IMG/VR virus record: IMGVR_UViG_3300034104_005687
Location: 285,370 to 349,369 of that record
DNA: 64,000 nt
Reading direction: 5' to 3' (one strand)
The notes below the pieces were generated by a model. The model ran no database searches and was not told the origin of the DNA. It worked only from the letters and a program-made list of their open reading frames with translations. This document shows, one piece after another, positions 24,807 through 63,968 of this stretch (position 1 is the first letter of the stretch; each line of letters opens with the position of its first letter). Position numbers and translations under genes: made by a program.

Positions 24807-26017
24807 GAAAGCTGTTCTACATGGGCTTGGAGAGCTACGAAGCCCGTTACACACTACAGCTCACAGAGTGGAACCGGCGTGTTTTTGAACGCCGTGGCTT
24901 AGACGTTGTGTATGTACCCGGCAACACCATTGACAACACACAGGCCATCTCAGTGGGTCAAGTGTTGGATGCACATGGTCGCAGTTACTTTGCCATGAGC
25001 CAGATGATGAATTTGGTTCAGATGATGAAGAACGGTGATGTCACAGGTGACGATGTGATCTACTTTGAAGACATGTTCCAGCCAGGCTTTGAAAGTCTTG
25101 GCTATATCATGAATCAGATTCCACGTGAACAATGTCCCAAAATCTATGTGCGTTGTTTGGCACAGGCCATTGACCCTGATGACTTTGTGCATGTATGGGG
25201 TATGGCAAAGTGGATGAACTTGTATGAACAAATGGTCAATGAAATGGTGGCTTTCTCGGGGGGTGCAGTATTGGCTACCAATGAGGAAATGGTCGCGCAC
25301 ATGCGCATTGCTGGATGGACTGCTCCAATCTACAACATTTCTGGTCTTGCATTTGGAAAGGCGGAAGTACTGGAGCGGATCGGTGGACTGGAAAAAATCC
25401 AACCGTTTAATCAGCGTTCCCGGAGGGTGGGTTTCGCAGCAAGGTTTGACCAAGAAAAGCAACCTGGCTTCTTTATGGATCTCATTGAAATGTATGGCGA
25501 GCTTACCACGGAGCCATGTGAGTTTGCAATTTACAGTGGCGGACCTTTGCGATCCAACAATCCAGAGTATGTTGAACGTGCCCGCCGTATGGAGGCAGAA
25601 GGCAAACTCCAGATCTATGACAACATAAGCAAGAACGAATACTATGCTCACCTTAACAATACTCGTGTGCTGTTTAATTGTGCTCTACAAGACTGGGTCT
25701 CTAACACAGTTTCCGAGGCTGACACTCTTGGCTGCAATGTTCTTTATCCTGCCTATCGCAGTTTCCCCGAAACTTTTGCAAACGATCCAAACAGGCTTTA
25801 TGTCCCTTGGAGTATAGACGATGCCTACCACAAAATGCAACTACTCTTACGAGAACCGCATCACAACATGGGACTTATTAGCGATTGGAACAATGCCACT
25901 GTGGATCGTGTTGTTGATATCGTTACTGGCATGGGTGAGCAGTGGAATCGAGCGGGCAATCGCTATCGTGACCATGCTGCTCACGAAAAATATCAAGTTG
26001 TAAAGATTGAATCATGA
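24803..26017 (+). CDS. GT-B (GT4-like) glycosyltransferase
   Basis: ARFDQEKQP, EADTLGC..LYP. Confidence 0.75.
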   Translation: MRKLFYMGLESYEARYTLQLTEWNRRVFERRGLDVVYVPGNTIDNTQAISVGQVLDAHGRSYFAMSQMMNLVQMMKNGDVTGDDVIYFEDMFQPGFESLGYIMNQIPREQCPKIYVRCLAQAIDPDDFVHVWGMAKWMNLYEQMVNEMVAFSGGAVLATNEEMVAHMRIAGWTAPIYNISGLAFGKAEVLERIGGLEKIQPFNQRSRRVGFAARFDQEKQPGFFMDLIEMYGELTTEPCEFAIYSGGPLRSNNPEYVERARRMEAEGKLQIYDNISKNEYYAHLNNTRVLFNCALQDWVSNTVSEADTLGCNVLYPAYRSFPETFANDPNRLYVPWSIDDAYHKMQLLLREPHHNMGLISDWNNATVDRVVDIVTGMGEQWNRAGNRYRDHAAHEKYQVVKIES

Positions 26018-26958
26018 ATGTTGTAGTAACAGGCGCTGCTGGCTATATTGGCGGCCAAGTGGCATTGCAGTTGCAAGATGCAGGCCACTCTGTAACAGGC
26101 ATTGACCGCAGACCTTTGCCACAACACCTTCGAGGTATAATGAAGTTTGTGCAAGCAGACTTTGACAGCGACGAGTCCTATAAATTGTTGTTGGATGTGC
26201 AGCCCAATGCTATTGTACATTGTGCCGGTACTAGCCTGGTTGGGCCCAGCATTAAAAAACCTTCAGATTACTACAACAACAATGTGGCCAAGACCCTGCA
26301 CCTGCTTAATTTTATAACACAGGCTTTGCCTCGAACTAGATTTATTTTTAGTTCAAGCGCAGCAGTATACGGTGAACCTATTATGACACCATGTCACGAA
26401 GTTGATCCTTTGCAACCTATCAGTCCCTACGGTCAAAGCAAATTGATGACAGAAATGATCTTGGAGAGCTATCATTGTGCTTATGGGCTGGACTATGTGG
26501 CATTCCGCTACTTCAATGCCTGCGGTGCCGACAGCCAAGCTAGGCATGGACAAGAGACAGGTGCCACGCACATCATTGCCAGGGTGCTGGAAAGCATTAG
26601 AGATCAACAAGATTTTGTGCTCAACGGCATTGACTATGCCACCCCCGACGGAACCTGTGTGCGTGACTATGTGCATGTGGAAGACATTGCTAGAGCACAT
26701 GTCATGGCATTGGATCAGACAGTTCCTGCTGGAGTATACAATCTTGGATCCAACACAGGAACCAGCAACAGAGAAATTATTGACACAGCACAACAGGTCA
26801 CTGGCAGTGCTGTGGTAATTCAAGTAGGCAAAAAGCGAGCAGGCGATCCTCCTGTGCTCACAGCCAGCGCCGCTAAGTTTGAATTGGTTGTAGGTAATTG
26901 GAAACAACACAGCTTGACTGACATGATTCGTCATGCATGGGCCTGGTACAATGTTTGA
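26014..26958 (+). CDS. galE: UDP-glucose 4-epimerase
   Basis: GAAGYIG, FSSSAAVYG, YGQSK, RYFNACG, RDYVHV. Confidence 0.92.
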   Translation: MNVVVTGAAGYIGGQVALQLQDAGHSVTGIDRRPLPQHLRGIMKFVQADFDSDESYKLLLDVQPNAIVHCAGTSLVGPSIKKPSDYYNNNVAKTLHLLNFITQALPRTRFIFSSSAAVYGEPIMTPCHEVDPLQPISPYGQSKLMTEMILESYHCAYGLDYVAFRYFNACGADSQARHGQETGATHIIARVLESIRDQQDFVLNGIDYATPDGTCVRDYVHVEDIARAHVMALDQTVPAGVYNLGSNTGTSNREIIDTAQQVTGSAVVIQVGKKRAGDPPVLTASAAKFELVVGNWKQHSLTDMIRHAWAWYNV

Positions 26959-27535
26959 TAAGATCTTAAAATTTGAACAAGAGTTGGCCGAGTTTACCGG
27001 CGCACCTTATGCCATCATGACCGACTGTTGCACACATGCTATCGAACTGTGCTTGCGACATGACCGGGTGCGTGAAGTGGTGATGACTCCATATACCTAT
27101 CTCAGCATACCTATGACCATGCACAAGTTGGGCATCAAGTATTACTACAAAGAAGAAGAATGGACGGGCGAATATCGTTTTCACGGTACTAGAATCTGGG
27201 ACTCAGCACGAAGACTTGAAAAAGATATGTATCGTGCTGGATCAATGCAGTGCTTGAGTTTTGGATACACCAAGCCCTTGCACATAGGTCGTGGTGGCGC
27301 TATCTTGTTGGACGATTTAGCCGCATACAAAACTATAATTCGTCAACGCTACGATGGTCGAGATCTTGATATCTCGCCCTGGCAAACTCAAAAAACATTT
27401 CATGTGGGCTATCACTACAAACCCACGCCCGAAGAAGCAGAAATTGGCAGTGCGTTGTTGGTAGGTCTGCGGGAAAGCAAACCCAACCCTGTGCCAGTAC
27501 TTTACCCTGACTTACGCAATATAACTATTGTATGA
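26951..27535 (+). CDS. DegT/DnrJ-like sugar aminotransferase (short)
   Basis: CTHAIEL, DSA, SFGYTKPL..GRGG. Confidence 0.75.
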   Translation: MFDKILKFEQELAEFTGAPYAIMTDCCTHAIELCLRHDRVREVVMTPYTYLSIPMTMHKLGIKYYYKEEEWTGEYRFHGTRIWDSARRLEKDMYRAGSMQCLSFGYTKPLHIGRGGAILLDDLAAYKTIIRQRYDGRDLDISPWQTQKTFHVGYHYKPTPEEAEIGSALLVGLRESKPNPVPVLYPDLRNITIV

Positions 27536-28548
27536 ATTGTATACGTCGACAACATTCAGGGTTGCTGCATTATGGTGCATTGCATCTTGCCCCAGGTCAT
27601 ATTGACACTGTGGAACAAGTTGAATCTATAGTGCTCAGAGATCTCAATGACAGTGGTCTAACCATTGATGATTTAAAATCCAATACTTTGTTGTTGGACT
27701 TTAGGTGCGAAGGACAATGTGACAAACTTGTCAAGAATATAATCACATATTTTCGCAGTGTTCCAGTGATGGATATAGCCGTGATATTCAATGCCAAGGT
27801 CAATGTTGATGAGTTAGATTATCTCGCAGTGTCAGATCCCGAAACTCTGGTAGATCATCAACAATGGTTTACTTTGCTAAAACAACATGCATTGATTCAG
27901 GACACAGACTGTGACTTTTTGTGTCTAATGCGTAGACCCAGTCATACCAGGGCAAAACTGGCCAGTCGACTTTTAAAAGAAGTTGGTAGTTTAAGAATCA
28001 GTTTTGGATCTATGTACCAGTCGCCGGGTTGGCTTGTTGACTATCAACATTATTTTTCTGACCACTCATTGCCGTTGTTGTTGGATGGTATAACTGTTAG
28101 AGATCACCGCAAACTGGAGTATCAAGTTGACAGTGCACTATTTAGAAAGTGTGCTGTAAATATCATTGTTGAAAGTTCCAGTCAGACAGGTACAGATAGT
28201 TGGCACAGTATTTTTGTCACAGAAAAAACGTTCAAGGCTTTTGGAATGCTGCAATTGCCAATTTGGTGGGCAGTACCCGGAGTGGTAGACTGTGTGCGAA
28301 ACATGGGATTTGATGTGTTTGACGACATAATTGATCACAGTTACGACCAAGAACACAATGAAGATCTAAGATTTGAAATGTTGATCAAACAGATCAAACA
28401 GTTGGAATCTAAAAATCTTGCACAACTCAGAACTGAATTGATGCCTCGCCTCATAGCCAATTGGGAAACACTTGATCATAAATGCAATGCTAATTTTGGG
28501 CAATTTCGACGCATATTAAAAGATTTAAATCTTGACACTGCAATCTAA
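27532..28548 (+). CDS. Putative GT-B-like phage protein (ET..EK family)
   Basis: FVTEKTFK, GFDVFDDIIDHSYD. Confidence 0.6.
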   Translation: MNCIRRQHSGLLHYGALHLAPGHIDTVEQVESIVLRDLNDSGLTIDDLKSNTLLLDFRCEGQCDKLVKNIITYFRSVPVMDIAVIFNAKVNVDELDYLAVSDPETLVDHQQWFTLLKQHALIQDTDCDFLCLMRRPSHTRAKLASRLLKEVGSLRISFGSMYQSPGWLVDYQHYFSDHSLPLLLDGITVRDHRKLEYQVDSALFRKCAVNIIVESSSQTGTDSWHSIFVTEKTFKAFGMLQLPIWWAVPGVVDCVRNMGFDVFDDIIDHSYDQEHNEDLRFEMLIKQIKQLESKNLAQLRTELMPRLIANWETLDHKCNANFGQFRRILKDLNLDTAI

Positions 28549-28560
28549 ATACATTACAAT
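28532..28560 (+). promoter_or_regulatory. Sigma70-type promoter
   Basis: TTGACA-17-TACAAT. Confidence 0.75.
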
Positions 28561-28599
28561 AGCACAAAGACATCCACGTCATTAACTCGGAGAACTGAA

Positions 28600-29421
28600 T
28601 TGACAAAAAACTTTATCCCGCATCCAATCATCCATGCGGATTCAAAAAACAAATTTATACCCAAAAATTACAACATTCCGCTTGAAGAAACAGGCCTAGA
28701 TGCAATGGCAGGCGATGGTGGATACCGAGAAGAAAAGTATCTTGGAAATTACCTTCGTGCAAAGATGAAGCGTGACGGCAAAAGATTTTGGGCAGGTGAC
28801 AACATCAGTGAGTATGTTAACGAACAAGACAAAGAGCAACTGATCGACGAAGCCACAGAAGCATTTGAACTAGTGCTTGACCGTTTGCTGATTGATCGAG
28901 AAACAGATCCCAACTCAAAAGGCACAGCAAGACGACTGGCCAAAATGTACTTTAACGAAATCATGGAAGGTAGATATGAGCCAGAACCAGACGCAACCGC
29001 TTTTCCCAATGACTCAGCGGATCGATATGAAGGAATGCTTGTGGTGCGCAGTGAGCTTCGCAGTATGTGCAGTCATCACCACCAACCTGTCAGTGGCGTT
29101 GCTTATATCGGGATTATTGCCGCTCAAAAGCTCATTGGTCTTAGCAAGTACACTCGTATTGCTCAGTGGTGTGCTCGTCGTGGCACACTACAGGAAGAAC
29201 TTTGTAATGACATTGCCCGCGAGATTTGCAGGGCCACCGATTCAGAAAGCGTAGCAGTATACATTCAGGCCACACACGGTTGCTGTGAGAATCGCGGCAT
29301 TATGGCTCACAGTAGCCTCACACAAACCACAGTACTAAGAGGCGCCTTCAAACAAGACCAAAGTGTCAAGAAGGAATTCTTTGACAACATCAAACTACAA
29401 CAGGACTTTGCACCACGATGA
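28600..29421 (+). CDS. folE: GTP cyclohydrolase I
   Basis: SMCSHHHQP, IGLSK, LQE, HGC..RG. Confidence 0.93.
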   Translation: MTKNFIPHPIIHADSKNKFIPKNYNIPLEETGLDAMAGDGGYREEKYLGNYLRAKMKRDGKRFWAGDNISEYVNEQDKEQLIDEATEAFELVLDRLLIDRETDPNSKGTARRLAKMYFNEIMEGRYEPEPDATAFPNDSADRYEGMLVVRSELRSMCSHHHQPVSGVAYIGIIAAQKLIGLSKYTRIAQWCARRGTLQEELCNDIAREICRATDSESVAVYIQATHGCCENRGIMAHSSLTQTTVLRGAFKQDQSVKKEFFDNIKLQQDFAPR

Positions 29422-29813
29422 CCGATCTTGAACAAGCACAAGCTGCGGGAATCGCCCCGTGGGATTTAAAAGTTGTCGACCTTAGTGATTTTCATGTGAC
29501 TGTGTTTGAAGATCGATATCCTGTTGCTGTTGGGCATCTACTGTTTGTACCCAACTACAACACTCCTACAGTGATAGTAGATGCGTTTGAATCTGCGTTG
29601 GCTCAGGGTAATCGTATGGTGGCCGCGAGCAAATGCGATGCATTTAACATTGGAATCAACATGGGATCAGCAGCAGGTCAGACTGTGATGTATCCGCATG
29701 TGCACTTGATTCCGCGACGCACCGGAGACTGTGCCGACCCTGTGGGCGGAGTGCGTGGCGTAATTACTGGGCAAGCCAACTACAAGCAATCAGGCTATCG
29801 TCAACCTGGATAA
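29418..29813 (+). CDS. HIT family hydrolase
   Basis: GHLLFVP, AGQTVMYPHVHLIPR. Confidence 0.9.
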   Translation: MTDLEQAQAAGIAPWDLKVVDLSDFHVTVFEDRYPVAVGHLLFVPNYNTPTVIVDAFESALAQGNRMVAASKCDAFNIGINMGSAAGQTVMYPHVHLIPRRTGDCADPVGGVRGVITGQANYKQSGYRQPG

Positions 29814-29823
29814 GTACTATCTC

Positions 29824-29862
29824 AGCGGCCTTTCCGGCATTCATCCCGCTATACAAACTCTG
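29824..29862 (+). promoter_or_regulatory. preQ1-I-like riboswitch candidate upstream of queD
   Basis: AGCGG/CCGCT stem, loop ending CATC, A-rich tail ATACAAACT. Confidence 0.4.
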
Positions 29863-29896
29863 CAGGCCTATGCTATAATATACATAGGAGAACACA

Positions 29897-30421
29897 ATGG
29901 CAAAATATCTTTCAACAAAAACTTACGGCAACGACCGCGGACTTTCATGCTGTTTTAGACAGTGGCGCAGTGCTCACAGTCACTGTAGTCTACTGCACGG
30001 ATACTCAATCGGAATCAAGTTGGTGTTTGAATCGGAAACACTAGATGATCGAAACTGGGTCATGGACTTTGGTGGACTCAAGGCATTCAAAGAGTGGAGT
30101 GAATGGCAATTTGATCATACCACTGTGATTGGTCATGATGATCCTCATCTGGCAAAGTTCAAAGAACTGGCTAAGTTGGGCAAGCAGGCAGAAGGCGGTG
30201 TACTAGATCTACGTATTGTAGAAGCAGTAGGTTGCGAAAAGTTTGCCGAACTAGCTTATCGTACAATGGCAGAAATTCTAGAAGCATATCAGCAAGGACA
30301 GGGTTGGACACACCCAGATGGTCGTGTGTTTGAAGCACGTTATCCTGTGGGCGCAGGTGTTAGATTGCGCAGTGTGGAAGTGTTTGAACATGCTGGTAAC
30401 TCAGCAACCTACGAAGGGTGA
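29897..30421 (+). CDS. queD: 6-carboxytetrahydropterin synthase
   Basis: CSLLHGY, VMDFG, FDH, EH..NSATY. Confidence 0.88.
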   Translation: MAKYLSTKTYGNDRGLSCCFRQWRSAHSHCSLLHGYSIGIKLVFESETLDDRNWVMDFGGLKAFKEWSEWQFDHTTVIGHDDPHLAKFKELAKLGKQAEGGVLDLRIVEAVGCEKFAELAYRTMAEILEAYQQGQGWTHPDGRVFEARYPVGAGVRLRSVEVFEHAGNSATYEG

Positions 30422-31260
30422 ACATGAAACCTAAATTTGACATAGCCCTTCTACTGCCCACTCGTGGGCGTACTGAAGCATTGATCACCAGTGTGAAAAG
30501 TGTGTTTGAATTGGCAGACATTCCTGATCGCTTACAGATGCTGTTTGCGTTTGATCGAGATGACGAAATTGGTAAAAAGTTTTTCCAAGATGAAATCCAA
30601 CCTTGGCTGGACGAGAAGAAGTATCACTATACAGCCATGTTGTTTGATACCATGGGCTATGTTGGTCTGCATCGTTACAACAACAAACTGGCAGAAAAAA
30701 CAGACGCCCGGTGGTTGGTAATCTGGAACGATGATGCTATCATGGAAACTCAGGGATGGGATACGGAAATCATGAAGCATCAAGGTGATTTCAAACTGCT
30801 GGCATTTCATACACACAATGATCATCCCTACAGCATCTTTCCTATTTTGCCACGAGAGTGGTACGAATTGCTGGGATATATTAGTCCGCATCCCACACAA
30901 GATGGCTGGCTCAGTCAACAGGCATACATGCTAGACATATGGGAGCGTATTCCTGTGTGGGTCACGCACGATCGACACGATCTTACTGGAAACAATCTCG
31001 ACGAAACTTATAAGAATCGTGTGATGTACGAGGGAAAACCCAATGATCCTCGAGATTTCCACAGTGTGGAACAACTGAGCCTACGTCATCAAGACTGCTT
31101 CAAACTTGCTGCGCATCTTAAACAGAACTACAACAAAGACATGACATTTTTTGAAAACGTATTCAAAGGCACACAAGATCCTTGGGAAAAATTAGCACAG
31201 AACGATGTCAATCAACAGATGGTGCAATTTGACAATCCGCACAAACATTTTAGTAAATAA
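30418..31260 (+). CDS. GT2-like glycosyltransferase
   Basis: LLPTRGR, WNDD. Confidence 0.7.
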   Translation: MNMKPKFDIALLLPTRGRTEALITSVKSVFELADIPDRLQMLFAFDRDDEIGKKFFQDEIQPWLDEKKYHYTAMLFDTMGYVGLHRYNNKLAEKTDARWLVIWNDDAIMETQGWDTEIMKHQGDFKLLAFHTHNDHPYSIFPILPREWYELLGYISPHPTQDGWLSQQAYMLDIWERIPVWVTHDRHDLTGNNLDETYKNRVMYEGKPNDPRDFHSVEQLSLRHQDCFKLAAHLKQNYNKDMTFFENVFKGTQDPWEKLAQNDVNQQMVQFDNPHKHFSK

Positions 31261-31263
31261 CGG

Positions 31264-33261
31264 ATGAAAACAAAAATTGCATGGGTTCAACCCAATTTCC
31301 AACAAGGTCCCAAAGAATTCAACGCATACTACCTACCTTATTCAGCAGGTGTAGTATGGAGTTACAGCCTTCATGATTCTGCCATACGCGATCAGTTCGA
31401 AGTTACCGAGTGGATATGGCGTAGAGAAGCCATTGAGGAAACAGCACAGCGTCTAGCAAAAAATGACATTATAGCATCCAGTGTATATGTATGGAATCAT
31501 CGTTATAACTATGCCCTGTGCAAACGAATAAAAGAAATCAATCCCAACGTGTTGATTGTGATCGGCGGGCCCGAGCCAGCAATCACAGACCCTAAATTGT
31601 TTCTTGACAATCCTTGGATGGACCTGGTAGTGTGCTACGAAGGCGAAATAACTTTCAAGCGTTTGCTACAACATTATCATAACAAAGACTGGGAGTCAGT
31701 GCCGGGCTTGTTGATCAACCAGAACGGCGAAGCAGTAAAAACCCAAGACTCTGAACGTATTGAGGAACTAGGAGATGTTCCTAGTCCGTACCTGGCCGGA
31801 ATTTTTGATGACTTGATAGCTAAACATCCTGAGATCACTTGGCAAGGTACACTGGAAACCAATCGTGGTTGTCCATATGCTTGTACATTCTGTGACTGGG
31901 GCAGTTTGACCTATAACAAAGTCAAAAAGTTTGGCCTGGAGCGTGTGTACGCTGAATTAGAGTGGATGGCACGACGCAACTTTGACTGGATCTCAATCAC
32001 CGACGCCAACTTTGGTATGTTTCCCGAGCGCGATGGTTTGATTGCCGACAAGATCATTGAGTGCCAAGAAAAATACGGATCACCACGTACATTCTCTGTG
32101 GCCTGGGCCAAGAATCAAAAGAAAGAAGTAATTGACATTGTCAAAAAGTTGCTGGACAGCAAAGGCTTCAATCAAGGACTTACACTGAGTGTGCAAAGTC
32201 TTGACTTGGATGTATTAGAAAACATCCGACGCAAAAACATGGAAATGAACAAGCTAGAAGAAGTATTCAGCTTGTGTGACCAACGCAACATTCCTGCCTA
32301 TACAGAATTGATCCTTGGGTTGCCTGGGGAGACCATGGAGACTTGGAAGAAAAACTTTTATGCCTTGTATGATCTAAATCAGCACACTGGCATCACTGTT
32401 TTCCAGGCGCAGTTGTTGGAGAATGCTGAAATGAACTTGCTGCAAAAAAAGCTGTTCAAGATCACTAGCCAACCAGTCACTGACTATTTTGCCGGCAGCT
32501 ACAGTGTAGAACACATTGAAGAAAGCATTGACGTAATCACTGGCACCAAAGATATGCCTACTCCAGTCATGCTGGATGCACAAATTTTTAGTTGGTTTCA
32601 GACTACATTTCACATCAATGGGTTTGCTACCTTGATTGCTAGATTTGTAAACAAGCATCTGGGCATCAGCTACAACGACTACTACGAAGATCTGTTTGCA
32701 TACTGCAAATCAAATGCGTGGATTGCCAAAGAAGAGGCTGAAGCTAGGCAGTATTTTGGAAACTGGATGACCACTGGAAAAATTGATCACCCCAAAATTG
32801 GTGTTGAGATACATGGCTGGAACATTATTCATCGTACCAGCATGAACATGCACAGCGAAAACAAAACTGATGAATTGTATGATTTCATTGAAACATTTTT
32901 GCAAAGATACAATTTGCCACAGGATCTGATTGACAGTGTGATGAAACTGCAACGTTCGTACTATATCAAGTACGATGCTCGAAATCACTATCCAATGGTG
33001 TTGGAACTAGACTACAATATTTGGGATTTTCTCAGCTTTGACCAGCCATTGACCAAGGCCAAAACTCAATACAAATTGGATTTTCCTGAAGACAAAACCA
33101 TGAGTTTCAACAGATTTCTAGAGTTGTTTTATTTTGCTCGTCGTCGAAACTTTGGCAAAGCCACTGTGGACCTTGTGGGCACAACAAGTACCAAGGGAGC
33201 ACAACGTGGTGCAGGCGCAGCAAAAGCACAAGGATCATTCTCAATCAAACAACTGTCATGA
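31264..33261 (+). CDS. B12-binding radical SAM protein
   Basis: IVIGGPE, EGE, RGCPYACTFC, DANFG. Confidence 0.9.
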   Translation: MKTKIAWVQPNFQQGPKEFNAYYLPYSAGVVWSYSLHDSAIRDQFEVTEWIWRREAIEETAQRLAKNDIIASSVYVWNHRYNYALCKRIKEINPNVLIVIGGPEPAITDPKLFLDNPWMDLVVCYEGEITFKRLLQHYHNKDWESVPGLLINQNGEAVKTQDSERIEELGDVPSPYLAGIFDDLIAKHPEITWQGTLETNRGCPYACTFCDWGSLTYNKVKKFGLERVYAELEWMARRNFDWISITDANFGMFPERDGLIADKIIECQEKYGSPRTFSVAWAKNQKKEVIDIVKKLLDSKGFNQGLTLSVQSLDLDVLENIRRKNMEMNKLEEVFSLCDQRNIPAYTELILGLPGETMETWKKNFYALYDLNQHTGITVFQAQLLENAEMNLLQKKLFKITSQPVTDYFAGSYSVEHIEESIDVITGTKDMPTPVMLDAQIFSWFQTTFHINGFATLIARFVNKHLGISYNDYYEDLFAYCKSNAWIAKEEAEARQYFGNWMTTGKIDHPKIGVEIHGWNIIHRTSMNMHSENKTDELYDFIETFLQRYNLPQDLIDSVMKLQRSYYIKYDARNHYPMVLELDYNIWDFLSFDQPLTKAKTQYKLDFPEDKTMSFNRFLELFYFARRRNFGKATVDLVGTTSTKGAQRGAGAAKAQGSFSIKQLS

Positions 33262-33959
33262 CACGACTGTTTACATTTGGATGTAGCTACACTAACTATC
33301 GGTGGAGCACGTGGGCAGACTGCCTTGCCCCAGAATTTGATTACTTTGAGAACTGGGGTCAAGGCGGTGGCGGCAATCATTACATATACAACAGCGTAAT
33401 GGAGGCTGATCAGCGTCATTGTTTTGGTGCAGGCGACACTGTAATTGTATGCTGGTCTACTTTTATGAGAGACGATAGATATGTACAAGGTCGTTGGCAT
33501 ACTCTAGGTGGTATGTTTACTACTCCAATATATCAATCCGAATACTTGAAATCTCATGTAGATGAGCGAGGGTATGTTATACGTGACCTTGCGTTTATTA
33601 AAGGTGTAAAATCATTGTTAGAAACTAAACCTAATCTAACATGGAAATTTCTTAGTCTAGCCAATCTCAAGCTGGGCACTAGGTGCGAGACGGCGCCTGG
33701 CGAACCCAAAGATGTGATGGAAGTGTATGCAAATGTGCTAGATACAATATTGCCCAGCTACCAGGAAACAATATTTAAAAACGGATGGAAACAGGCAGAA
33801 GATCCTCACCCATCTCCCGAAGAACACTTAGCCTATCTGGATACAGTTTTGCCAGGCTGGGTGACAAAACAATCTACTCGTGTTAAAATGTGCGAAGAGA
33901 GTATCAATCTAAATAAAAATCCCCGCAAGCCGGGACTAGCAAAGGTAAAAAGACTATGA
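33258..33959 (+). CDS. SGNH-like hypothetical protein
   Basis: FGCSYT, NWGQGGGGN, DPHP. Confidence 0.55.
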   Translation: MTRLFTFGCSYTNYRWSTWADCLAPEFDYFENWGQGGGGNHYIYNSVMEADQRHCFGAGDTVIVCWSTFMRDDRYVQGRWHTLGGMFTTPIYQSEYLKSHVDERGYVIRDLAFIKGVKSLLETKPNLTWKFLSLANLKLGTRCETAPGEPKDVMEVYANVLDTILPSYQETIFKNGWKQAEDPHPSPEEHLAYLDTVLPGWVTKQSTRVKMCEESINLNKNPRKPGLAKVKRL

Positions 33960-34801
33960 AATTCAAAGTTAGTGAATTATTTTATTCAGCGCAGGGCGAA
34001 GGTCGCTATGTGGGAGTGCCCAGTGTGTTCCTTCGCATGTTTGGCTGCAACTTTACCTGTTCGGGATTTGGCTGCAAGCCTGGAGAAAAAAGCACCGAAG
34101 CAGATGAGGTAGCAAAAACTGTTGAACTGTACAAAACGTTTGAAGAACTACCCTTGGTGAACACTGGCTGCGACAGCTATGCCAGCTGGCATCCTGCGTT
34201 CAAGCACTTGAGCCCAACATATACTGCCGAAGAACTTGTGGACAAAATGGCAGCGATATTGCCCAATGGAGTGTGGCAACAACCCAATGGCAATCCTGTG
34301 CACTTGGTAATCACGGGTGGTGAACCCTTGCTGGGTTGGCAACGTGCTTATCCAGAACTGCTGGACCTGTTGCACGAACGTGGTCTGCGCCACATCACAT
34401 TTGAAACCAATGGTACCCAAGAACTTGGTGCAGAATTCAAACAGTACTTGTTGAATTGGTTTGGTGAGATTACATTTAGTGTAAGTCCAAAGTTGAGTGT
34501 GAGTGGCGAAAGCTGGGATGATGCCATCAAGCCTGATATTGTGTGGGACTACGAAACATACGGCATCACCTACATGAAGTTTGTGGTAGAAAAGATTGCA
34601 GACTTTGATGAACTGGATCGTGCAGTACATCAGTATCGACTGCGTGGGTTTGCTGGTCCTGTGTTTGTGATGCCCGTGGGCGGGGTAGTCAGTGTGTACG
34701 ATGGCAACCGTATCAATGTTGCTGACGAAGCACTGCGTCGAGGTTACTGGTACAGTCCAAGATTGCATGTGGATCTTTGGGGCAATGGTTGGGGGAAATA
34801 A
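33956..34801 (+). CDS. queE: 7-carboxy-7-deazaguanine synthase
   Basis: FYSAQGEG, FLRMFGCNFTC, TGGEP, ETNGT, SPK. Confidence 0.92.
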   Translation: MKFKVSELFYSAQGEGRYVGVPSVFLRMFGCNFTCSGFGCKPGEKSTEADEVAKTVELYKTFEELPLVNTGCDSYASWHPAFKHLSPTYTAEELVDKMAAILPNGVWQQPNGNPVHLVITGGEPLLGWQRAYPELLDLLHERGLRHITFETNGTQELGAEFKQYLLNWFGEITFSVSPKLSVSGESWDDAIKPDIVWDYETYGITYMKFVVEKIADFDELDRAVHQYRLRGFAGPVFVMPVGGVVSVYDGNRINVADEALRRGYWYSPRLHVDLWGNGWGK

Positions 34802-35224
34802 ATGTTTGATCAAATCAAAGCATTGTTTGGTGCAAACGCCAACGTAAATCCTAAACCCACTGTACTAAAGCCTGAGCCGCCGCCTGCTCCGCCCAAGAAA
34901 AAAGCACCTGAAAAGTCAGCCAAAGAATTGGCCACCGAAAGTGGCGAACCTTATGTGGCCGTGCTCAGCATGGATGTAGACCCAGACAATCTGCACCAAG
35001 GCGCATTTGAACTAGACTGGAATGACATCTTTGTGGCTCGTCTGGTCAAGGCCGGCTACATGATGAAACCCACAGATACCGATGCTGACATTGTGGATCG
35101 CTGGTTCCAGAATGTGTGTCGTCATGTTGTGATGGAAACTTGGGAACAAGAACAAGCCATCAAACAATCGGGTATCTATGTACAAACCAAACCTCTAGGC
35201 AACGGCAGGAGCGAAGTGTCATGA
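34802..35224 (+). CDS. Hypothetical protein
   Basis: Abutting ORF in operon. Confidence 0.7.
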   Translation: MFDQIKALFGANANVNPKPTVLKPEPPPAPPKKKAPEKSAKELATESGEPYVAVLSMDVDPDNLHQGAFELDWNDIFVARLVKAGYMMKPTDTDADIVDRWFQNVCRHVVMETWEQEQAIKQSGIYVQTKPLGNGRSEVS

Positions 35225-35697
35225 TTTTTAACCACATCAAAGAACTCAAATCCCAAGGCAAAAAAATTGGCATTACATTCAGCACCTTTGACATGTTGCA
35301 TGCTGGACACATTGCCATGCTGAGCGAAGCTCGAAATTATTGTGATTACCTTATTGCCGGACTTCAAACTGATCCCACTACTGATCGTCCTGACACCAAA
35401 AACAAACCAATTCAAAGTGTAGTCGAACGTCAGATACAGCTGGCCGCTTGTCGTTACGTAGATGAAGTTGTTGTTTATCAAACAGAACAAGATCTTGTTG
35501 ACTTACTGTTGATCTTACCAGTGGACGTTCGTATCCTTGGGGTAGAATACGAAGGCAAAGACTTCAGTGGCCAACACGAATGTTACATGCGAAACATTGA
35601 AATTGTGTTTAACGGCCGAGATCATTCATTTAGTAGCAGTAGTTTGCGCAAGCGAGTTGTTGCCGCAGAAATAGAAAAAGAACTAATCAAAAAATGA
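35221..35697 (+). CDS. Cytidylyltransferase (TagD/RfaE-like)
   Basis: FDMLHAGH (HxGH), YVDEV, SSSSLR. Confidence 0.88.
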   Translation: MIFNHIKELKSQGKKIGITFSTFDMLHAGHIAMLSEARNYCDYLIAGLQTDPTTDRPDTKNKPIQSVVERQIQLAACRYVDEVVVYQTEQDLVDLLLILPVDVRILGVEYEGKDFSGQHECYMRNIEIVFNGRDHSFSSSSLRKRVVAAEIEKELIKK

Positions 35698-47571: not shown

Positions 47572-47646
47572 GGGGCTATAGCTTAATGGTAAAGCAGTGA
47601 ACTCATAATTCATTGAGTCTAGGTTCAATTCCTAGTGGCCCTACCA
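47572..47646 (+). tRNA. tRNA-Ile2/Met (CAT)
   Basis: Cloverleaf with CCA; promoter TTGACA-17-TACAAT at 47535-47563. Confidence 0.88.
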
Positions 47647-47652
47647 TTTTTA

Positions 47653-47727
47653 CTGGGGTTCGTATAATGGATAATACACGGGTCTTCTAAGCCCTTTATA
47701 GAGGTTCGATTCCTCTACCCCGGACCA
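47653..47727 (+). tRNA. tRNA-Arg (TCT)
   Basis: Cloverleaf, GGTTCGATTCC, CCA. Confidence 0.88.
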
Positions 47728-50487: not shown

Positions 50488-50571
50488 GCGACTGTGGTGG
50501 AATGGTATACACAGCAGACTTAAAATCTGCCGCCTACGGGATTGAGGGTTCAAGTCCCTCCAGTCGTACCA
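50488..50571 (+). tRNA. tRNA-Leu (TAA)
   Basis: Type II cloverleaf, CCA. Confidence 0.9.
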
Positions 50572-54889: not shown

Positions 54890-55798
54890 ATGAAAAAACT
54901 TTTAACTGCTGTGGTTCTGTCCATGGCCGCACTGAGTGCAAATGCCAAAGAAACCATTCAAATCATCTATGGGTTTGGAGCCGGTGACAACAGCACCAAC
55001 TATGCTCGCAACATGGCCGCAGAAGCCAACAAAATTCAAAACAAATACAATTTTGTGTTTGACGTCAAGTCCGGCGGCGGACAAGTCGTGGCCTTTAACT
55101 ATGTGAAAAATACGTCAGGTGCAATTTTTATGACATCGGGTGCATATTGGCTGCGACCCAATTTCTATCCCACAGCAAGTTATGATGTCAACGAATTTCG
55201 CACCATCATGACACAATGCAGTGTGCCGTTTGCTGTGGCATCCAAGAAGCATGCCAACTGGGCCAGTGTGCCCAAAAATCAGCCAATTACCATTGCCACC
55301 TCGGGGCTGGGAGTGGTCAGTCATTTGACAGCATTGCAAATTCAAAAGATATATCCCAACTCCACTATTGTGCCATACAAGAGCACTTCCGAAGCATTGG
55401 TTGCCACAATGTCAGGACAAGTTGATCTTGTAGTGGGTTTTGTAGGCGACATCGAAAAATACACACAAGAAGGATTTGCTGGAAAACTAACTACCTTGGG
55501 CACCACCGGTCCCAAGTTTGTGGGCAACTATCCTAACTTGACCAGTCAGGGATTCCCTGCACCGCTGGCCAAGATGAATACTCCCTACAACTTGATGGTG
55601 CCACGATCTTTTCCTGAAGACAAAGCCAAAGAAATTCGTGAAATCTTGTTGTCGGTGGAAAACAAAAAATCAGTACGTGATGCATATGCACTGGACCATT
55701 GCCAGCCTTTCCAAGTACCTGCAAAGGATCTTGGCACCTGGTGGAACGAGCAAAATCAATACTGGTCTGGTTTGACTGTTGGCGTCAAGATTGATTAA
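54890..55798 (+). CDS. Bug/TctC substrate-binding protein
   Basis: Signal peptide, VPYKS..SGQVD. Confidence 0.8.
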   Translation: MKKLLTAVVLSMAALSANAKETIQIIYGFGAGDNSTNYARNMAAEANKIQNKYNFVFDVKSGGGQVVAFNYVKNTSGAIFMTSGAYWLRPNFYPTASYDVNEFRTIMTQCSVPFAVASKKHANWASVPKNQPITIATSGLGVVSHLTALQIQKIYPNSTIVPYKSTSEALVATMSGQVDLVVGFVGDIEKYTQEGFAGKLTTLGTTGPKFVGNYPNLTSQGFPAPLAKMNTPYNLMVPRSFPEDKAKEIREILLSVENKKSVRDAYALDHCQPFQVPAKDLGTWWNEQNQYWSGLTVGVKID

Positions 55799-55808
55799 AT
55801 AAAAGTTA

Positions 55809-56176
55809 TTGCTGTATGAAGCAAAGAGAAAAGTGTCTTGGACGGGGGTGCGAATCCCCCCAGGTCCACCAATAAGGATGATTATGAACGTTACACAAAC
55901 ATTAAAAGTTACAGGCTATCTAGTAGGTGCATACATTGCTTACAAGTTAGGTCTTGAAGTGTGGTGTGTTGTTTATGGACTGCTTTATTGATGGGCCTGA
56001 CCTAGATTCGACAGGGCAACAAGTAAATTAGTGGACAGCTCGGCAATGTGAAAGCCGTTAGGGTTGGGAGAACTCGGCCGTAGAAGCAAAAAAAGTAACC
56101 GCAAACGACTCACAGTTCGCATTGGCAGCTTGAACAAGGCTACCTAGGGTAAGACATACCTCGTAACAGAAACTCC
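55809..56176 (+). ncRNA. ssrA: Circularly permuted two-piece tmRNA, tag ANDSQFALAA; outer ends approximate
   Basis: T-arm + CAGGTCCACCA (ends 55871) precedes GGGCCTGA..GATTCGAC (55993); G3-U70 pair; tag 56101-56133. Confidence 0.9.
55884..55991 (+). CDS. 35-aa hydrophobic ORF inside the tmRNA intervening segment
   Basis: AAGGA RBS; fills the spacer almost exactly. Confidence 0.45.
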   Translation: MNVTQTLKVTGYLVGAYIAYKLGLEVWCVVYGLLY

Positions 56177-56203
56177 AAAAAGGCGTCAAAATACGCCTTT
56201 TTT
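56177..56203 (+). terminator. Intrinsic terminator
   Basis: AAAAGGCGT..ACGCCTTTTTT. Confidence 0.8.
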
Positions 56204-60859: not shown

Positions 60860-60934
60860 GCTGGGTTCGTCTATCGGTTAGGACACAAGCCTTTCACGTT
60901 TGTAAGACGGGTTCGATTCCCGTACCCAGTACCA
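60860..60934 (+). tRNA. tRNA-Glu (TTC)
   Basis: Cloverleaf, CCA. Confidence 0.9.
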
Positions 60935-60938
60935 TTTT

Positions 60939-61024
60939 GGAGATGTAGGAAAATTGGTAACCCCAGTGGACTGTAAATCCGCCGCCTTACGGCACTACTG
61001 GTTCGACTCCAGTCGTCTCCACCA
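60939..61024 (+). tRNA. tRNA-Tyr (GTA)
   Basis: Type II cloverleaf, CCA. Confidence 0.9.
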
Positions 61025-61231
61025 ATGAACGTTCCGGGTGTCTCCGGATAGTGTGACCCACACGATGAGAAGTTGAGTGACATCAACGGGTGGTAGTCTT
61101 TGAACCCAAAGGCCGCTGGCAATGCGAGAACGGTCCCTGTCGGGAAGCGGGTGGAAGGTACGTGTGATGGGTACGATAGCGTCGTATCTTGATGTACTAC
61201 AATTACCGCCGGGGGATGCAGAGCATTTTTG

Positions 61232-61389
61232 TTTTTATAGTCAAGCATCGATACAGGTATCGTGACAGGACGCTGTCACTATTCGGGCCTAACTGTGCGA
61301 GGAACAGGTCCTGACATAACTGCTATTCGCTTGTCAGTGTTAGCTACATTGTTGACAAATCGGCATCTCTCGGTGCTTGACTATAAAAA
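61232..61389 (+). ncRNA. Stem-closed putative small RNA
   Basis: 20-bp closing stem 61232-61251 / 61370-61389. Confidence 0.5.
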
Positions 61390-61392
61390 TAT

Positions 61393-61470
61393 GTAGGGGT
61401 GGCAGAGTGGTCAAATGCAACGGATTGCAAATCCGTAAAGCCGTGAGTTCAAATCTCACTCCCTACTCCA
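61393..61470 (+). tRNA. tRNA-Cys (GCA)
   Basis: Cloverleaf, U73, CCA. Confidence 0.88.
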
Positions 61471-61557
61471 TTGATAAACACATTCACAGATCCGCCCTGT
61501 TACCTAGGGAGTCAGCGAGTAACCGCTTATGGACTGTTCAAGAGTGTGTTTTTCAAT

Positions 61558-61649
61558 GGGAGTGAGACTTGGTAGTCAGAGAGGTCTTATATACCTTTTA
61601 GCGCCAGATTAGCGTTCTTGAGAGAGTTCGATCCTCTCCACTCCTACCA
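61558..61649 (+). tRNA. Atypical tRNA with TAT anticodon and long variable arm
   Basis: GGGAGTG/CACTCCT acceptor, GAGGT-CTTATAT-ACCTT, T arm, CCA. Confidence 0.65.
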
Positions 61650-61659
61650 TAAATAATGG

Positions 61660-61735
61660 CGCAGTGTGTTAGAAGCGGTATCTGGCAAGGCTCATAACCT
61701 TGAGGTCGGGGGTTCGATTCCCTCCACTGCAACCA
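61660..61735 (+). tRNA. tRNA-fMet-like (CAT)
   Basis: C1xA72 mismatch, CCA. Confidence 0.82.
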
Positions 61736-61793
61736 ATTTGAGTCGTGTGATATAAATATCACACAAGAGCTTCTTGAGGTCAACCTCAAGAAG

Positions 61794-62004
61794 TAAATAA
61801 AGTACAATAGGACTTATGATGCAAACAATCATTCATTCACAGTTAAAATCCGCAATGTGCCCCCAGACACTGGTCTGGTCACGCGGCTTTACATCTGCGA
61901 ATAGTATTCCAGGGTCACCTGGGTCCTTTGAAGGCGAGAAGATTCTAAAAGTCTAACTCGCACAAATTCAAAAGGACCCCGGGACTAAAAACCCCGGGGT
62001 TTTT
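61794..62004 (+). promoter_or_regulatory. Attenuator-like unit 2: 46-aa leader ORF (61816-61956), antiterminator, terminator
   Basis: 61921-61932 pairs with 61967-61979, overlapping terminator 61976-62004. Confidence 0.6.
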
Positions 62005-62186
62005 CTTTTAGTGCAACGGCAACGCGAGCCGGCAACACTCTAAACTGCAAATGGGCGGCCTGTAGGATGGAGCACTTCTTCTAGTGTGAAAAATTACAGC
62101 GTATTAAAGCATTCTTTAAGAACAGGCAGCCTAAGTATTTTAGAGTGCTTTAATACACACATTCCTAAGAGTGTGTTTGAAAATTT

Positions 62187-62261
62187 GGGCTGATAGTGAT
62201 AATGGGAGCACAGTGGCTTTGCAAGCCTCGGGTCGGGGTTCGATCCCCCGTCGGTCCACCA
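62187..62261 (+). tRNA. tRNA-Ala (TGC)
   Basis: G3-U70, CCA. Confidence 0.9.
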
Positions 62262-62266
62262 AATAG

Positions 62267-62340
62267 GTATCCATAGTGTAATGGCAGCATCGCGGTCTCC
62301 AAAACCGTCAGTCTAGGTTCGAGTCCTAGTGGGTACGCCA
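62267..62340 (+). tRNA. tRNA-Trp (CCA)
   Basis: Cloverleaf, CCA. Confidence 0.9.
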
Positions 62341-62348
62341 AGTTTTGT

Positions 62349-62422
62349 TCGGGTATAGTGTAATGGTAACACCACAGACTTTGACTCTGTTATTCTAGGT
62401 TCGAGCCCTAGTACCCGTGCCA
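62349..62422 (+). tRNA. tRNA-Gln (TTG)
   Basis: Cloverleaf, CCA. Confidence 0.9.
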
Positions 62423-62430
62423 GTTTCGTT

Positions 62431-62504
62431 GCTCGGTTAGTTAAATGGTATAACGGACGCTTGATAAGCGTTTATTACAAGTTCAATTCTTGTACTGAGC
62501 ACCA
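62431..62504 (+). tRNA. tRNA-Ile (GAT)
   Basis: Cloverleaf, CCA. Confidence 0.9.
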
Positions 62505-62549
62505 ATTTTTGTAGGCGGTCACAGAGCCGTCTATAAGTAAAAAGTTCAT

Positions 62550-62639
62550 GGTGCGGTCCTATAATGGTATTAGAGCGGATTGCTAATCCGTCGCTCGGTG
62601 AAAGCCGGGTTCTGAGTTCGAGTCTCAGTCGCACCGCCA
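62550..62639 (+). tRNA. tRNA-Ser (GCT)
   Basis: Type II cloverleaf, CCA. Confidence 0.9.
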
Positions 62640-62645
62640 GAATAT

Positions 62646-62721
62646 TCCCCAGTAGCACAGCGGTAGTTGCACTTGACTGTTAATCAAGGTGTCCGTGGTT
62701 CGATCCCACGCTGGGGAGCCA
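62646..62721 (+). tRNA. tRNA-Asn (GTT)
   Basis: Cloverleaf, CCA. Confidence 0.9.
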
Positions 62722-62726
62722 AGTTT

Positions 62727-62800
62727 GCCCTATTAGTATAATGGTATTACACCTGTTTTGTAATCAGGTTACGGCAGTTCGATTCTGTCATGGGGCACCA
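62727..62800 (+). tRNA. tRNA-Thr (TGT)
   Basis: Cloverleaf, CCA. Confidence 0.9.
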
Positions 62801-62807
62801 AAACAAC

Positions 62808-62881
62808 GCGGGATTAGTTTAATGGTCAAACGAAACCTTGCCAAGGTTTAGTCAGGAGTTCGATTCTCCTATCCCGCTCCA
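62808..62881 (+). tRNA. tRNA-Gly (GCC)
   Basis: Cloverleaf, CCA. Confidence 0.9.
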
Positions 62882-62885
62882 TCTT

Positions 62886-62959
62886 GCTCCTATAGTATAA
62901 TGGTAATACACGCCCTTGGTAAGGGCGAGCCGCAAGTTCAATTCTCGCTAGGAGCACCA
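62886..62959 (+). tRNA. tRNA-Thr (GGT)
   Basis: Cloverleaf, CCA. Confidence 0.88.
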
Positions 62960-63014
62960 TTTACAAGTCTACACTCTCCCTTGACGAGCTAGGTCCCTGG
63001 ACTTTTGTTTCACT

Positions 63015-63092
63015 GCGTCTCTAGTTCAACTGGATAGAACACCGGCCTACGAAGCCGTGAGGTTGGGGATTCGAATTCCTCGGGACGCACCA
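63015..63092 (+). tRNA. tRNA-Arg (ACG)
   Basis: Cloverleaf, CCA. Confidence 0.85.
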
Positions 63093-63100
63093 AACAGCAG

Positions 63101-63129
63101 TTGACAACATTCTGTGATTGTTGTATAAT
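63101..63129 (+). promoter_or_regulatory. Consensus sigma70 promoter inside tRNA array
   Basis: TTGACA-17-TATAAT. Confidence 0.85.
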
Positions 63130-63239
63130 AATATTTTTGACACAAAGAGGTAATGACATGAAACGAGGTAAACTCTAGTGTCATCCTAGACCCCGTATGG
63201 TCCTGGATGGCACGATAAAGACAATTCTTTACGATCCAT

Positions 63240-63314
63240 CCCTTCGAGATGTTATGGTAGCATAGCGGACTCTTAATCCGACAAGCGTCAGTTCGACTCT
63301 GACCGGAGGGACCA
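63240..63314 (+). tRNA. tRNA-Lys (CTT)
   Basis: Cloverleaf with A8, CCA. Confidence 0.8.
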
Positions 63315-63317
63315 TAT

Positions 63318-63392
63318 GGGGGTATAACTTAACGGCTAAAGTAGTAGGCTTTTAACCTATTAATCAGAGTTCGATTCTCTGTGCCCCTACCA
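63318..63392 (+). tRNA. tRNA-Lys (TTT)
   Basis: Cloverleaf, CCA. Confidence 0.9.
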
Positions 63393-63474
63393 TATAAAAA
63401 CACATTACAAGCGGTATCGCTTTTCGGCAAAGCCCGTGCCAAAGTAGTCAGTCTAGGATAGTGTGTTTCTATAT

Positions 63475-63549
63475 GGTGTCCATAGTTTAGTGGTAAAACC
63501 GCGGGTTGTGATTCCGCTATCACGAGTTCGATTCTCGTTGGATACCCCA
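63475..63549 (+). tRNA. tRNA-His (GTG)
   Basis: G-1:C73, CCA. Confidence 0.9.
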
Positions 63550-63559
63550 AAATATTTTG

Positions 63560-63634
63560 GGTTGTATGACATAGACGGATGTGTACCGGCTTCATAAGCC
63601 GAGGAGGTTGGATCGATACCAACTACAACCACCA
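63560..63634 (+). tRNA. tRNA-Met (CAT)
   Basis: Cloverleaf, CCA. Confidence 0.82.
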
Positions 63635-63635
63635 A

Positions 63636-63710
63636 GGGCCTTTAGTTCAACGGATAGAATGCCATGCTTCGAACTTGGCGATGTGGGTTCGATTCCTGCA
63701 GGGCCCGCCA
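63636..63710 (+). tRNA. tRNA-Arg (TCG)
   Basis: Cloverleaf, CCA. Confidence 0.88.
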
Positions 63711-63711
63711 G

Positions 63712-63882
63712 TTAGATGTTTTCGATAAAATTCAATGCGTCTTCCATGTTGGTAAAATATCGCATGGTCAGGCGTTCGTTGTAAATATCGTTGACAAAGA
63801 TGTAGCACACAGATGCATCGTGGTTGACGGATAGGTGTATATGAGCCCATCCGTTGGCAGCAAAGAAGTCACGTTGTTGCAT
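63712..63882 (-). CDS. 56-aa hypothetical protein antisense between two tRNAs
   Basis: Minus-strand TAAATA at 63887-63892, 4 nt before ATG; fills the spacer exactly. Confidence 0.55.
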   Translation of the reverse strand: MQQRDFFAANGWAHIHLSVNHDASVCYIFVNDIYNERLTMRYFTNMEDALNFIENI

Positions 63883-63894
63883 CAAGTATTTATT

Positions 63895-63968
63895 GCGGGG
63901 TTCGTATAGTGGTAATACCTTAGCCTTCCAAGCTAAAGCGAGGGGTTCGATTCCCCTACCCCGCTCCA
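63895..63968 (+). tRNA. tRNA-Gly (TCC)
   Basis: Cloverleaf, CCA. Confidence 0.92.

Follow-up and report, generated by a model that had tools for sequence, protein, structure and literature searches.

Does the short stretch in front of the queD gene of an uncultivated phage carry a preQ1-type riboswitch, or another kind of regulatory RNA? The DNA analyzed here (the window) is a 64-kb stretch that forms the end of a 349-kb IMG/VR virus record estimated to be 97% complete. The window carries a tmRNA gene, which matches both the permuted and the betaproteobacterial tmRNA models, and at least 23 tRNA genes, mostly in one array, so the record belongs to a jumbo phage. The locus lies between a HIT-family ORF and a PTPS/QueD-like ORF, with a GTP cyclohydrolase I gene upstream (Table 1). 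A sequence-only reading had described, after the TAA of the upstream ORF, a 5-bp stem AGCGG/CCGCT enclosing a 17-nt loop and followed by ATACAAACT (29851-59), together with a competing pairing of GGCCT (29827-31) with AGGCC, and had interpreted it as a variant preQ1-I riboswitch that possibly senses another deazapurine such as CDG or DG. All of these letters are present at the positions given, and the observation is confirmed. The interpretation is only partly supported: the stretch is one copy of a strongly conserved, phage-specific RNA pseudoknot that resembles the smallest preQ1 riboswitch but matches no Rfam 15 family.

Table 1. Positions in the 64-kb window of the queD leader element and of the genes mentioned in the text
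Feature	Position	Strand	Sequence	Remarks
GalE	26014-26958
DegT/DnrJ-type aminotransferase ORF	26933-27535			200 aa; best Pfam match covers positions 21-87 of the 360-position profile; may be truncated or split
ORF	27532-28548			No Pfam, NCBIfam or PHROG match and no match in GenBank phages
GTP cyclohydrolase I (FolE)	28600-29421
HIT-family ORF	29418-29813
Stop codon of HIT-family ORF	29811-29813	+	TAA	Element starts 10 nt after it, here inside an operon transcript
Pseudoknot (putative aptamer)	29824-29868	+
P1 5' strand	29824-29828	+	AGCGG	Pairs with 29846-29850
L1	29829-29835	+	CCUUUCC	Length varies among copies
P2 5' strand	29836-29840	+	GGCAU	Pairs with 29864-29868; 4 of 5 pairs in the window (A29839 with G29865 is a mismatch)
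L2	29841-29845	+	UCAUC	Consensus UCAYC; C29842 and A29843 can pair with G29862 and U29861, extending P2
P1 3' strand	29846-29850	+	CCGCU
Embedded sigma70-like promoter (predicted)	29850-29879	+	-35 TATACA (29850-55); TG (29871-72); -10 TATAAT (29874-79)	18-nt spacer; -35 in L3, -10 in the P3 loop
L3	29851-29863	+	AUACAAAC + UCUGC	Consensus NUANANAY UCUGC
P2 3' strand (switching strand)	29864-29868	+	AGGCC	Shared with the RBS-occluding helix
P3 hairpin	29867-29888	+	CCUAUG (29867-72) with CAUAGG (29883-88)	Covers AGG of the Shine-Dalgarno sequence; shares CC 29867-68 with P2
Shine-Dalgarno sequence	29886-29890	+	AGGAG	6 nt before the ATG
queD (PTPS/QueD-like, 174 aa)	29897-30421	+		Putatively regulated gene; Pfam PTPS 1.5e-13; PHROG 2389 QueD-like 8.4e-33; only PTPS gene in the genome
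Glycosyltransferase-like ORF	30418-31260
KedN5-like B12 radical-SAM methyltransferase	31264-33261
ORF	33258-33959			No Pfam, NCBIfam or PHROG match and no match in GenBank phages
QueE-like radical-SAM enzyme	33956-34801			PHROG 2076, 1.5e-52
Cytidylyltransferase-like ORF	35116-35697
tmRNA and tRNA genes	47572-47724, 50488-50568, 55759-56203, 60860-63965

Conservation and distribution of the queD leader element

A 5-bp stem alone would be unremarkable, and conservation upstream of queD homologs, which had been named beforehand as a point on which the reading could fail, is what shows that the element is not due to chance. Eighty IMG/VR loci were collected by similarity to the QueD protein alone (78-100% identity), and inspection of the 110 nt before each start codon showed the same layout in about 70 of them: a 5-bp stem NGNGG/CCNCN, a 13-19 nt loop ending in UCAYC, a tail NUANANAY-UCUGC, and a variable block after the tail. 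A covariance model built later (R1) found exactly one + strand hit in 76 of these 80 loci, just 5' of queD or of a tandem pair of PTPS genes. The tandem arrangement was seen in loci L019 (2496-3525) and L080 (2427-3525); in L080 the two PTPS-family copies are about 46% identical to each other and both keep the CxxxHGY motif. A DNA pattern taken from the invariant part of the element gave at least 120 hits in IMG/VR, and of 80 loci examined, 77 have a QueD homolog directly downstream, many only 30-45% identical to the QueD of the window. The same pattern with one base changed gave only 31 stretches, 28 of them chance.

Within the window the core pattern occurs once against 0.10 expected, and model R1 hits once in the whole 349-kb genome. 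A second model (R2), built from 89 sequences that exclude the whole subtype to which the window belongs, found 29822-29869 as the only hit in the 64 kb (57.2 bits, E 1.7e-11).

Outside these phage contigs the element was hardly found. BLAST of the locus and of the 48-nt putative aptamer against GenBank phages returned no homolog, and model R1, run with filters off on the queD regions of the four cultured phages with the closest QueD proteins (Achromobacter phage Motura, Xanthomonas phage PhiXhv-15, Acinetobacter phage HD01 and Pseudanabaena phage Pan1), found nothing; in three of them queD abuts the gene before it. A pattern scan of 185,579 bacterial species genomes gave at least 120 hits, and among the 120 listed only one is a full motif (locus L267, 2509-2555, - strand), on a 5.5-kb contig binned into a Bacteroidetes MAG, the rest being chance matches. 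This contig could be a hint of the host or a mis-binned phage contig. Sampled 31-mers of the locus occur in lake-water metagenomes from 21 studies. In one of these metagenomes, a minority contig lacks one base in the P2 3' strand (window 29865; depth 38 of 171), giving the shorter form seen in relatives such as L006, and indicating natural microdiversity at the switching strand. The two or three RNA libraries found hold only short contigs of relatives and show no transcript ends or levels. A 91-nt contig from a freshwater metatranscriptome library (window 29894-29959) joins the leader tail of a subtype-C relative, from the P2 3' strand through the Shine-Dalgarno sequence, to a queD start; this is a weak hint that the leader of a relative is transcribed, as DNA carry-over cannot be excluded.

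Two crossing helices and comparison with known riboswitches

The pairing was analyzed on an alignment of 133 unique copies with gaps only in L1. Three features were included: helix P1; helix P2, with one further pair in many relatives; and two inner pairs, C29842-G29862 and A29843-U29861. In total, 91.2% of cells form standard pairs, against 30-49% when the partners are slid by 1-3 columns, and 277 cells are changed on both sides against 91 in shuffles. None of 500 shuffles reached the observed value for four of the five measures. All six P2 pairs and three of the five P1 pairs (A-U/U-A; C-G/A-U/U-A; one G-C/C-G) show changes on both sides, while the two top G-C pairs of P1 are invariant in all 133 copies. 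Across 133-140 unique copies, P2 pairs 1-5 are 77-93% standard pairs, in a fixed register that was also recovered by an anchor-based count that uses no alignment fitting. There are 51 distinct P2 strand combinations, and 74 G-U cells against 17 A-C cells point to the + strand RNA, that of queD. The inner C-G pair is replaced by U-A in one lineage (loci L006/L030). P1 was predicted independently by RNAalifold. However, the collection filter required P1 complementarity and GG/CC, so the complete pairing of P1 is partly due to selection, although the raw upstream sequences of the protein-defined set show it too. The two helices cross each other and form an H-type pseudoknot, with a P1 of 5 bp and a P2 of 5-7 bp plus the two inner pairs. 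The GGCCT/AGGCC pairing proposed in the sequence-only reading does exist in the window, but relatives do not keep it, as the block at the position of AGGCC pairs with the five loop bases just before UCAUC; the pairing called competing had been assigned to the wrong partner.

The unpaired bases at the P1/P2 junction are nearly invariant. These include C and U at the second and third positions of L1, UCAYC in L2, and ANANAYUCUGC in L3. Part of this invariance was imposed by the search pattern for the loci numbered from L082 onward, but not for the protein-defined set. Such a cluster is typical of a small-molecule pocket. The cytosine just 5' of the P1 3' strand (C29845) lies where preQ1-I has its specificity cytosine, and is C in all copies of the protein-defined set. 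A natural variant with U at this position (R1 42.3 bits) was found in one separate lineage of three identical contigs (L340, 1965-2010, +; L344, 7418-7463, +; L354, 6763-6808, -), behind a TTGACA-17-TATACT promoter and in front of a divergent PTPS gene (28% identity to that of the window), and may have a changed ligand specificity.

Gathering-score scans of the window and of 20 related loci against Rfam 15, and scans at E<=10 on short stretches around the window element and three representative relatives, gave only tRNAs, a tmRNA and chance matches, some of which merely trace the P3 hairpin. No match to PreQ1 (RF00522), preQ1-II (RF01054) or preQ1-III (RF02680), or to any other riboswitch, was obtained. 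Comparison with the features listed in the 2024 review of the preQ1 family (PMC11625349) showed that the element shares with preQ1-I (types I-III) a small H-type pseudoknot, a 5-bp P1 with a G-C top pair, a C immediately 5' of the P1 3' strand, usually preceded by U as in type I, an A-rich stretch after P1, and a position in front of a gene of the queuosine/7-deazaguanine pathway. However, the first base of L1 is not the conserved U that contacts the ligand in preQ1-I (C 43, U 52, A 45 among 140 unique copies), the C and U that follow being invariant instead. In addition, the invariant UCA of L2 and UCUGC of L3 have no preQ1-I counterpart, P2 is longer, and the A-rich L3 does not run directly into the P2 3' strand but is followed by six extra invariant bases (YUCUGC). 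The P2 3' strand is complementary to the Shine-Dalgarno sequence or start codon rather than including Shine-Dalgarno bases, which implies the opposite regulatory sign. The possibility that this is a divergent but true preQ1-I riboswitch, binding preQ1 or preQ0 made by the host and turning queD OFF like all known preQ1 riboswitches, is therefore unlikely, and the lack of detectable QueC, QueF and TGT in these phages (see below) also weighs against it. The preQ1-II and preQ1-III riboswitches are likewise pseudoknotted sensors of a 7-deazaguanine that control translation, and class III also places its RBS-pairing element away from the pocket. They are HLout pseudoknots of about 80-100 nt with four or five helices in front of queT, whereas the element described here is about 45 nt, with two helices and a plain H-type topology.

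Predicted promoters and a putative expression platform

The position of the element in the transcript differs among subtypes. In subtype C, 13 of 16 unique leaders have a TTGAC-17-TATAAT promoter, with the -10 ending 7 nt before P1 in 11 of the 13, and in subtype B, 28 of 57 have a -10 hexamer ending 3-11 nt before P1 (mostly 7-9), against 13% in shuffled controls; 16 of these 28 also have a TTGACA-like -35. In these subtypes the RNA would begin at or next to P1, as in classical riboswitch leaders. The window's subtype (A, 46 unique leaders) follows the stop codon of an upstream gene and has no such promoter, but holds instead the embedded sigma70-like promoter, which in the window has 10 of 12 consensus matches plus the TG. 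Among the 46 leaders, TAnnnT and TG are each kept in 43, and the -35 is TTTACA, TATACA or TCGACA at 17-18 nt. If used, this promoter could yield queD mRNA that lacks the putative aptamer. It is nevertheless very unlikely that the region is only DNA-level punctuation, that is, a promoter with a chance hairpin after the HIT stop codon. A promoter cannot explain the compensatory changes in P1 and P2, the G-U strand bias, or the same element in subtypes B and C, which lack the internal promoter, and P2 covaries within subtype A itself (for example GGUG/CACC and GGCG/CGCC). An intrinsic terminator or RNA-stability hairpin for the HIT gene was also considered, as a G+C-rich stem begins shortly after the stop codon. 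This possibility is remote and the terminator reading was rejected, since there is no U tract, the loop is 17 nt, a terminator scan found nothing on the + strand here, and in most relatives the element follows a promoter and not a gene end.

The block after UCUGC has two possible partners. In subtypes B, C and the remaining leaders outside subtype A, position i of this block pairs with position 7-i counted from the A of AUG, and positions 2-8 pair with positions +5 to -1 in 82% of cells, against 30-42% when shifted. Compensatory changes reach into the second codon, for example AAGUCAUC with GAUGACUU and UGCCAUUG with CAAUGGCA. The P2 5' strand is thus a mimic of the start region: an A to G change in the switching strand is matched by U to C in the loop, and the G stays compatible with the U of AUG as a wobble pair. 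In subtype A, the CC at the end of the P2 3' strand opens the P3 hairpin over the Shine-Dalgarno sequence, whose stem is conserved in 44 of 46 unique leaders, with one compensatory variant, CCUAUA/UAUAGG. P2 and the RBS-occluding helix (P3) therefore exclude each other. Partition-function folding, in which the predicted free state of the window occludes the Shine-Dalgarno sequence, made this sequence and the AUG more open in 108 of 129 leaders and less open in 7 when the putative aptamer was locked. This test is biased by construction, because blocking a strand tends to open whatever it would pair with, and the folding model cannot represent pseudoknots; the covariation of both alternative helices is the stronger argument. 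The minimum-free-energy fold predicted for the window does not contain P1, and the window's own P2 has a mismatch; both points count against the reading that follows.

The most likely explanation, held with moderate confidence, is a translational ON switch. In this view, P3 would form without ligand and queD would not be translated, whereas a bound ligand would lock the pseudoknot, hold the switching strand and free the RBS. This is the logic of translational ON riboswitches such as the add adenine riboswitch, in which a strand needed to close the aptamer is also complementary to the SD/AUG region, although the fold is unrelated (a three-way junction against a pseudoknot). The element also has two general features of riboswitches, a conserved structured RNA with covariation in the 5' leader of a metabolically coherent gene set, and a platform with mutually exclusive pairing. 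Comparative analysis demonstrates the conservation, both helices, the strand, the link to queD and the alternative pairing, while binding of a small molecule, any effect on expression, the direction of the switch and the ligand class are inferred from sequence alone. In subtype C the overlap of P2 and P3 can be as little as one base, so that coaxial stacking, which would give an OFF switch, is not excluded, and the two inner P2 pairs could persist together with P3. Furthermore, ON logic for a biosynthetic gene is unusual if the ligand is the end product of the pathway.

The same competition between P2 and P3 could instead give autoregulation or timing of translation through a protein or other trans factor, such as the PTPS enzyme itself, another phage protein or the ribosome. 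Pseudoknots that control translation by protein binding are well known in phages and in ribosomal-protein operons, and the comparative evidence shows structure and alternative pairing, not the nature of the effector. This alternative is considered unlikely because the element is very small, has about 20 invariant unpaired bases packed at the helix junction, and resembles a known metabolite aptamer fold. It also accompanies PTPS proteins as divergent as 28-45% identity, which argues against co-evolution with one protein surface.

Pathway context and significance

The genome has FolE, one PTPS/QueD and the QueE-like enzyme, but no match to QueC (PF06508) or TGT (PF01702), and no QueF was detected. 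The gene cluster (26014-35697) also holds a glycosyltransferase-like ORF, a KedN5-like B12 radical-SAM methyltransferase, GalE, a DegT fragment and a cytidylyltransferase-like ORF (Table 1). Five large relatives, two of them at least 98% complete, also lack TGT and show only weak partial QueC-family matches, and four of them have FolE and QueE. In 1.17 Mb around 140 motif copies, tblastn found no QueC, TGT/DpdA or QueF, but did find QueE in 37 loci and FolE in 39. Distant DpdA3/DpdA4-type enzymes, described in PMC10516641, could escape these searches. In two of the relatives (G002, 240-258 kb, and G005, 241-271 kb) the QueE-type profile gave 9-11 radical-SAM hits per genome, mostly clustered, which suggests a large family of radical-SAM paralogs in these jumbo phages. 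Given the lack of detectable QueC, QueF and TGT/DpdA, the phage pathway seems to stop at, or branch from, 7-carboxy-7-deazaguanine, so that preQ1 is not the obvious ligand. This fits the earlier suggestion of CDG or DG as ligand, which remains a hypothesis. The invariant C next to P1 and the FolE-QueD-QueE context point to a guanine-like heterocycle, either a 7-deazaguanine (CDG, DG, preQ0/preQ1) or a pterin intermediate (H2NTP, CPH4), and with ON logic a precursor (H2NTP or a guanine compound) is as plausible as a product.

Full-text literature searches found no description of a queD-leader RNA in phages, although many subscription papers lay outside their reach and a prior description cannot be excluded. 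Few riboswitches have been reported in phages, although preQ1 riboswitches of known classes have reportedly been noted in some, for example Streptococcus phage Dp-1, and no class restricted to phages has, to our knowledge, been described. The element is most likely a riboswitch of a new class or a far-diverged relative of preQ1-I. It is possible, although this reading is tentative, that it represents a new class confined to uncultivated phages, many of them lake-water jumbo phages, that senses 7-carboxy-7-deazaguanine, 7-deazaguanine or the pterin intermediates made by FolE and QueD, and switches translation of queD ON. It would then be the first riboswitch class known only from phages and the first activating sensor in the 7-deazapurine pathway. 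A putative aptamer of about 45 nt with this much covariation and a clear gene association is directly testable with a short list of ligands. If it binds a 7-deazapurine or pterin other than preQ1, or activates rather than represses, it widens the known range of the preQ1-like pseudoknot fold and would also give a small ON-type sensor. For phage metabolism, the element marks a widespread phage FolE-QueD-QueE pathway with no detectable QueC or DpdA. Every phage known to carry 7-deazaguanines in its DNA encodes a DpdA (PMC10516641), and these phages may therefore use the pathway differently or hold an unrecognised transglycosylase.
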